A DNA stretch of 59,482 bases, counting the filler, from Platydemus manokwari (lineage: Eukaryota), in NCBI GenBank assembly GCA_037951405.1. It is 6 parts of 6 records of this genome, joined end to end, with 100 filler letters (N's around TTAATTAATTAA, not from the genome) between each part and the next. Parts side by side here need not be neighbours in the genome. Positions count along the whole stretch, not along the records: positions 1 to 8,745 come from JBBMOY011356649.1; 5 more parts are not named here. One strand, given 5' to 3'. Shown one piece after another: positions 1,892-2,225 of the stretch. The notes under the pieces were generated by a model. It did not search any database. It was given only the letters and a program-made list of their open reading frames with translations, and was not told the DNA's origin. The position numbers were made by a program, and so were the translations under genes. The first letter of the stretch is position 1. Every line of letters begins with the position of its first letter.

Positions 1892-2225
1892 TTAGTATCT
1901 TCGAAGGCAGGTTAATTTACCGGTTCTGCGACATGACAGTCCTTTGCGTTTTCGTTTGAAAATGCATTTTTTACACTGGTATTTTAAGTGTTTTGGACAT
2001 TTCGATACACTATCCTTGCATTTACTGAAAAACTTTTCTTGAAGCTCCTCGAGTTCTTCAGAATCTGAAATTCAATTAAATTTCGACGAATAAATCAAAT
2101 GTACCATCTTCCAAATTTTTCACCAGCAGATCTTCAGATTCTGTATCATCGACATCGATTTCTTCAACAGCTTCGAGGAAATTGAAGAACACGACAATTA
2201 AACAGAGAACAATTGCGACTTTCAT
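1892..2225 (-). CDS. Secreted cysteine-rich cationic peptide precursor, 97 aa (antimicrobial- or toxin-like prepropeptide); complete two-exon CDS
   Basis: complement(join(1892..2064,2105..2225)) with a 40-nt phase-1 GTAC...TTTCAG intron at 2065-2104. Protein: MKVAIVLCLIVVFFNFLEA|VEEIDVDDTESEDLLVKNLEDDSEELEELQE|KFFSKCKDSVSKCPKHLKYQCKKCIFKRKRKGLSCRRTGKLTCLRRY*. It has a hydrophobic signal peptide, an acidic pro-region, a basic 6-Cys C-terminus and an upstream TATA box. Confidence 0.85.

Follow-up and report, generated by a model that had tools for sequence, protein, structure and literature searches.

Most small secreted peptides of flatworms lack annotation, because gene callers and homology searches alike miss short, spliced genes. 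In the DNA of Platydemus manokwari (assembly GCA_037951405.1), two short open frames lie on the minus strand between positions 2225 and 1892, and the question raised by this locus is whether they form one intact gene and, if so, what kind of peptide it encodes. The window, namely the whole stretch of DNA, comprised 59,482 nucleotides with filler included. The first-pass annotation had proposed that removal of a 40-nt intron turns a truncated open frame into a 97-aa precursor, consisting of a signal peptide, an acidic pro-region, and a cationic tail with six cysteines. The features of the locus are listed in Table 1.

Table 1. Features of the peptide gene and of its predicted precursor, in window positions.
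Feature	Position	Strand	Description
Exon 1, coding part	2225-2105	minus	ATG at 2225-2223; 40 codons and the first base of the split Asp codon
Intron	2104-2065	minus	40 nt, phase 1, GTACAT...AATTTCAG, 25% GC
Exon 2	2064-1892	minus	Last two bases of the split codon, 56 codons, TAA stop at 1894-1892
Signal-peptide-like segment	2169..2225	minus	Codons 1-19; MK, 15 hydrophobic residues, LEA
Acidic middle region	2036..2168	minus	31 codons, split by the intron; 16 D/E, 1 K; DL[LI][VI]KxLED block
Cationic six-Cys domain	1895..2035	minus	47 codons; 12 K, 6 R, 1 H, 1 D
TATA-like box TATATAAG	2254..2261	minus	About 30-35 nt 5' of the ATG; possible core promoter element

Without splicing, the frame from the ATG ran into a stop at 2078-2076 and gave a truncated ORF of 49 aa, and this in-frame TAA was located within the intron. 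The second frame, offset by +1, was open from 2071 to the TAA at the end of exon 2. The two exon frames are joined via the split codon (G/AT, Asp) because the intron length equals 3n+1, and the 40 residues of exon 1 and the 56 residues of exon 2 then bring the total to 97 codons. The start codon, the stop codon, both splice sites, and all six cysteine codons were intact. The G+C content was 36-37% in the exons (37% / 36%), compared with the lower value of the intron given in Table 1 and some 23-25% in the flanking DNA. As candidate signals of the gene, the TATA-like box and the variants of the poly(A) signal were weak, and the bacterial-type promoter scan was irrelevant to a eukaryotic peptide gene. 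A terminator-like hairpin at 1945-1966 (plus), returned by a bacterial-type scan, was rejected as a by-product of the Lys/Arg codon run; it lies within exon 2 on the opposite strand. Downstream, a 24-nt tandem repeat (1587-1652, 2.7 copies, 95% match) was located about 240 nt 3' of the stop codon.

The residue counts of the three precursor segments matched the signal, acidic, and cationic six-cysteine layout described by the first-pass annotation. The N-terminal core (residues 3-17) had a mean Kyte-Doolittle value of 3.09, which was the highest among the 97 open frames of the piece that begin with ATG, and cleavage of the signal would occur after Ala19. The net charge was about -15 for the acidic region and about +17 for the basic tail, whose cysteine gaps were 6, 7, 2, 10, and 7 (C-X6-C-X7-C-X2-C-X10-C-X7-C). 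At the end of the acidic region, EK and two hydrophobic residues stood directly before the first cysteine. It had also been noted that no dibasic site marks the boundary between the pro-region and the mature peptide; the observation was borne out, with KR, RR, and KK absent from the precursor upstream of the first cysteine, and likewise none at the corresponding boundary of the relative described below. Taken together, the product is likely to be a secreted, disulfide-rich, cationic peptide. Basic pairs were present between the fourth and the fifth cysteine, as KRKRK in the exon-2 piece (1895-2062, minus) and as RK in the relative. As pure speculation, cleavage at these internal pairs would yield a two-chain, disulfide-linked peptide.

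All homology searches were performed exon by exon, with the separate exon pieces as queries. Using phmmer, the exon-2 piece matched two of 1.84 billion representative proteins, referred to here as P0002 and P0001. The match with P0002, a protein of 91 aa (UniParc UPI0006027642, via MetaClust), covered query residues 2-53 and residues 42-90 of P0002, with an E-value of 7.6e-4 over the whole library and an identity of 51%. P0001, a repeat protein of 2178 aa, was dismissed as a chance match, sharing only a PKHL..RKGLS string with no cysteine aligned. A Pfam RasGAP match of the same piece was also rejected as a sub-threshold chance hit (20.5 bits, cut-off 28.3). In the pairwise comparison with P0002, the E-values were 2e-10 for the exon-2 piece, which holds the cysteine domain, and 0.003 for the exon-1 piece, which matched the N-terminal part of P0002 independently of exon 2. 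The Smith-Waterman score of exon 2 was 127, compared with 33 ± 6.4 for composition-preserving shuffles (none of the 5000 reached it; z about 14.6), and that of exon 1 was 51 compared with 23 ± 4.4 (reached by two of the 5000). The matches with P0002 were therefore not due to biased composition, since the shuffles scored far lower.

Other searches added no further relative. A word-indexed protein search with the three-row alignment of the two exon pieces and P0002 returned only P0002. Pfam identified no family in the exon-2 piece or in P0002, and tblastn of both exon pieces revealed no paralogue within the window. Exact look-up of the unspliced 49-aa ORF, of the adjoining 148-aa ORF, and of P0002 in the contig index gave no match, and Rfam gave nothing for the piece carrying the peptide gene. 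When PDB sequences were searched with the family profile, the best E-value was 0.68; the faint zinc-finger rows were not significant, and no toxin was found.

The alignment with P0002 also bears on the splice junction. The end of exon 1 (DLLVKNLED) was placed opposite DLIIKTLED, and the start of exon 2 (SEELEEL) opposite LEEPEET. Between the two exon pieces there was a single free column, corresponding to the split Asp codon and opposite a Glu of P0002, with no gap and no extra residue. The alignment over the exon junction was thus free of gaps, and the splice model is therefore supported. The open frames, the GT..AG sites, and this alignment agreed with the proposal that a 40-nt intron restores the 97-aa precursor. 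The first-pass annotation had also named an internal GTAAAT at 1920 as a donor whose use would change the cysteine pattern. Such use is disfavoured: the site sits within the conserved motif C-x-R-T-G-[KR]-x-x-C, and the sixth cysteine, which lies further downstream, is conserved as well. Judged from these sequence comparisons, from the exceptional hydrophobicity of the N-terminal core, and from the G+C content that sets the exons apart, the two-exon gene on the minus strand is very probably real.

The exact 91-residue sequence of P0002 was found in the S5 File ('Flatworm AMP-LPs') of Irvine et al. 2023 (PMC10414684), where it is the transcript/gene model mk4.028893.01 of Schmidtea mediterranea (PRJNA12585), listed as AMP-like peptide no. 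819. In that entry, the signal peptide is marked 'Y', the column for the propeptide site is empty, and the predicted peptide has 73 residues (PMC10414684). Furthermore, 63.6% of the AMP predictors were positive, and the pipeline step is given as 'Ungrouped', a label for peptides against which none of the other AMP-like peptides of flatworms scored 100 bits; such singletons left the pipeline, and the authors did not take the cysteine-rich and ungrouped candidates further (PMC10414684). S. mediterranea PRJNA12585 was the sole triclad assembly in that pipeline (PMC10414684). The identifier mk4.028893 was absent from the main text of the papers searched. The attribution of the peptide to flatworms, made in the first-pass annotation, was supported, the sole relative coming from the planarian S. 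mediterranea.

Both proteins shared the same order of parts, from the signal through the acidic region to the basic six-cysteine domain, with lengths of 97 aa for the window peptide and 91 aa for mk4.028893.01. The signal-like segment of the window peptide aligned with the segment of mk4.028893.01 that had been scored as a signal peptide (PMC10414684). All six cysteines were aligned, with gaps of 6, 7, 2, 10, and 7 in the window peptide and 6, 6, 2, 10, and 7 in mk4.028893.01, in which the second cysteine loop is one residue shorter. The conserved blocks were DL[LI][VI]KxLED, EK with two hydrophobic residues, KCPK at the second cysteine, and RKxKGLxCxRTG[KR] around the fifth cysteine. The exon-1 part showed about 40% identity and the cysteine domain about 50%, figures that rest on two sequences, the family having two known members of which mk4.028893.01 is a gene prediction. 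The opposite charges of the acidic and basic parts came close to balancing in both proteins. However, the charges of mk4.028893.01 were weaker (about -10/+12 compared with -15/+17). Its acidic region had 14 D/E and 4 K/R in 34 residues, whereas the window peptide had 16 D/E and 1 K in 31, and its basic domain had 13 K/R and 1 D/E in 39 residues compared with 18 K/R and 1 D in 47. The tail past the last cysteine was two residues long in mk4.028893.01 and four in the window peptide. No function can be transferred from mk4.028893.01, because it is itself uncharacterised.

The fold of the domain was predicted by AlphaFold2. With the exon-2 piece and a two-row alignment, the best model had a mean pLDDT of 70.8 (45-66 for the other four), and it placed a helix at residues 24-39, bearing the CxxC pair, before a beta-hairpin (42-47/49-54) bearing the last two cysteines. 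The same helix and hairpin were predicted for full-length mk4.028893.01, with a pLDDT of 59.1. A Foldseek search against the PDB gave a best E-value of 3.2 and no ShK entry, which for models of moderate to low confidence and so small a peptide is weak evidence either way.

The arrangement was compared with several named classes of cysteine-rich peptides. As in the CS-alpha-beta peptides (invertebrate defensins and macins), the model contains one helix and a beta-hairpin with cysteines on both. It would differ from them in having CxxC rather than CxxxC on the helix, and in having the strand cysteines seven apart on opposite strands, with no CxC. The window peptide matched no CS-alpha-beta defensin or macin in Pfam or in Foldseek, and flatworms are reported to have no CS-alpha-beta homologues (PMC10414684). 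The hairpin of the window peptide, G-x-x-C-x7-C, came near to the gamma-core formula but did not satisfy it. In cysteine-stabilised host-defence peptides this formula is GXC-X3-9-C. In defensin-type precursors, an anionic propiece neutralises the cationic cysteine-rich peptide. The window precursor resembles such prepropeptides by analogy, as it combines a signal and an anionic segment roughly cancelling a cationic C-terminal peptide that may hold three disulfides. However, no sequence or profile similarity to them was found and the cysteine spacing was different, so that the analogy is functional only.

Regarding the cysteine pattern, the first-pass annotation had read it as a rearranged ShK-like frame. 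Like ShKT domains (PF01549), the window peptide is a small, basic, secreted module with six cysteines, and its first two cysteine gaps are similar in size. It was different from ShKT past the third cysteine, where the gaps were X2, X10, and X7, with the CxxC in the centre and the last two cysteines seven apart. The ShKT pattern compared was the one quoted in the first-pass annotation, with closely spaced C-terminal cysteines, which the window peptide does not have. In addition, the ShKT fold is helical without a beta-sheet, whereas the window peptide was modelled with a beta-hairpin. With hmmscan against Pfam-A, PF01549 matched neither the exon-2 piece (E ≤ 10) nor mk4.028893.01 (E ≤ 1). The ShK-like reading is thus not supported. 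The glycine at the position of an expected cysteine and the extra cysteine after the third one, which had appeared aberrant, were identical in mk4.028893.01 and therefore belong to the family's own framework rather than to a mutated ShK domain. The resemblance to ShK is superficial.

The reading preferred here, with a probability of roughly 0.55, is that the locus is an intact gene for a secreted, disulfide-rich, strongly cationic peptide of an orphan family restricted to planarians (triclads), with host defence as the likeliest role. The hydrophobic N-terminus would direct the precursor into the ER and be cut near Ala19. The six cysteines could then form three disulfides, which in the modelled fold would lock the helix to the beta-hairpin. 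During synthesis and storage, the acidic stretch (about -15) may neutralise the basic domain (about +17), as the anionic propieces of the defensin type do. After release from the secretory cell, the cationic domain, with the acidic piece either kept or removed at a non-dibasic site, would bind anionic targets, of which microbial surfaces are the likeliest. Taken by itself, the host-defence role is tentative and somewhat short of an even chance. It is suggested by the charge, the cysteines, the secretion signals, and third-party predictors, and it is known that such predictors flag cysteine-rich peptides too readily (PMC10414684). In the same study, flatworms were found to be without the canonical lophotrochozoan AMP groups, and their predicted AMP-like peptides were mostly cysteine-rich (PMC10414684).

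Other readings of the locus were also considered. The product might be a secreted structural or adhesive component of mucus, adhesive glands, rhabdites, or egg capsules, acting by polyanion binding or cross-linking and having no antimicrobial role. A secretion signal, an extreme Lys/Arg content, and cysteines fit such a component equally, and planarian mucus is abundant and contains many lineage-specific proteins (10.1101/2025.01.09.632098). However, its very small size, its lack of repeats, and its fixed six-cysteine framework would be expected of a folded effector peptide more than of a matrix component, and the Pfam and phmmer searches showed no similarity to annotated mucus or adhesive proteins. 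A structural role was consequently regarded as unlikely.

A precursor of a neuropeptide or peptide hormone, with the disulfide-rich C-terminal peptide as a signalling ligand, would likewise begin with a signal peptide, continue with an acidic spacer, and end in a small peptide containing cysteines, and the basic pairs within the cysteine domain make a two-chain, disulfide-linked product conceivable. However, the boundary between spacer and peptide lacked a dibasic site in both proteins, no propeptide site was predicted for mk4.028893.01 (PMC10414684), there was no C-terminal glycine for amidation, and net charges in the range of +12 to +17 would be unusual in a ligand. Moreover, the diagnostic strings of both proteins were absent from the searchable part of the supplement text of two papers on planarian prohormones and the peptidome (PMC2953531 and PMC4825013). 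A signalling function is accordingly held to be quite improbable.

Still less credence is given to the reading that no functional gene exists here, the two frames being either paired by chance in AT-rich sequence or the remains of a dead gene copy of the S. mediterranea type. Open frames of 40-70 codons were common in this DNA of 30% G+C, and 29 GT..AG pairs at the locus restore the frame, so that ORF length and a pair of splice sites alone prove little. The word-indexed protein search with the exon-2 piece found no match, and two metagenome scans found no relatives. However, two frames in the right order and spacing both matched one 91-aa protein above the shuffles, the coding and splicing signals and the cysteines were undamaged as described above, and the pair 2104/2065 was the sole one of the 29 that keeps both conserved blocks beside the junction.

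A divergent, channel-blocking toxin-like peptide with an ShKT domain and a rearranged disulfide frame, which would account for six cysteines in about 40 Lys/Arg-rich residues and for first two gaps and a C-R-R-T string that loosely recall the quoted pattern, is scarcely credible given the unmatched PF01549 profile, the conservation of the deviant positions in S. mediterranea, the modelled beta-hairpin in place of an all-helical knot, and the lack of an ShK structure or a toxin among the Foldseek and PDB sequence matches.

The surroundings of the gene were also inspected. A decayed remnant of a reverse-transcriptase retroelement was found at 5576-8149 (minus), with a raised G+C content of 0.36-0.40. 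Two consecutive ORF pieces matched adjacent parts of Pfam RVT_1 (profile positions 90-143 and 146-190), with scores of 22.6 and 22.7 bits, each under the cut-off of 29.6, and the adjoining ORF pieces carried RT-like motifs by eye. Judged from the ORF frames, its RT reading frame has four or more interruptions, of which one or more are in-frame stops and three or more are frame changes; these counts are lower bounds. The word-based protein search found no relative of the remnant, and no PDB match was obtained. Some 3.3 kb separate the remnant from the peptide gene, and nothing evident connects the two. Just upstream of the remnant, a Ser/Arg/Lys-rich ORF of 78 residues (7913-8149, minus) matched no Pfam family and might be what is left of the first ORF of the retroelement. 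A 15-nt tandem repeat of 2.1 copies was located at 7822-7852. In addition, the region 3000-3750 had a mildly raised G+C content (0.32-0.33) and ORFs of 55-74 codons on both strands with no Pfam family; it could hold a further small gene that lacks annotation, or old repeat sequence. Pfam assigned no family to the other long ORFs of the window.

With regard to the preferred reading of a triclad-restricted orphan family, the first-pass annotation had suggested an undescribed flatworm family, and this was largely right. Neither Pfam, nor the PDB sequences, nor Foldseek named a family, but one member had already been listed, unnamed and 'ungrouped', in the S5 File of PMC10414684. The signal-like start, the acidic stretch with its DL[LI][VI]KxLED block, and the basic six-cysteine domain that characterise the orphan family were all found in the window peptide. 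Prepropeptides in which an acidic part balances the charge of a cationic, cysteine-rich peptide are a known kind; the sequence family is new, and the fold is possibly new. Invertebrate genomes commonly encode small, secreted, cysteine-rich peptides that are specific to one lineage, and on the evidence available the find is therefore solid but modest.

The gene described here gives the 'ungrouped' singleton of S. mediterranea a partner, and the resulting family of two conserves the cysteine framework, the motifs, and the layout of opposite charges. With this family, planarian genomes can be mined using a defined profile, and studies of expression and structure have a concrete candidate. A more specific proposal, which we regard as doubtful, is that both genes encode the first recognised triclad-specific, three-disulfide, cationic host-defence peptides, with a CxxC-helix/hairpin fold of their own and an anionic piece that is cut at a non-dibasic site. 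Big defensins, CS-alpha-beta peptides, and myticalins are reported to be absent from flatworms (PMC10414684). If the proposal is true, the two-gene family would fill some of the gap left by these 'missing' antimicrobial peptides.
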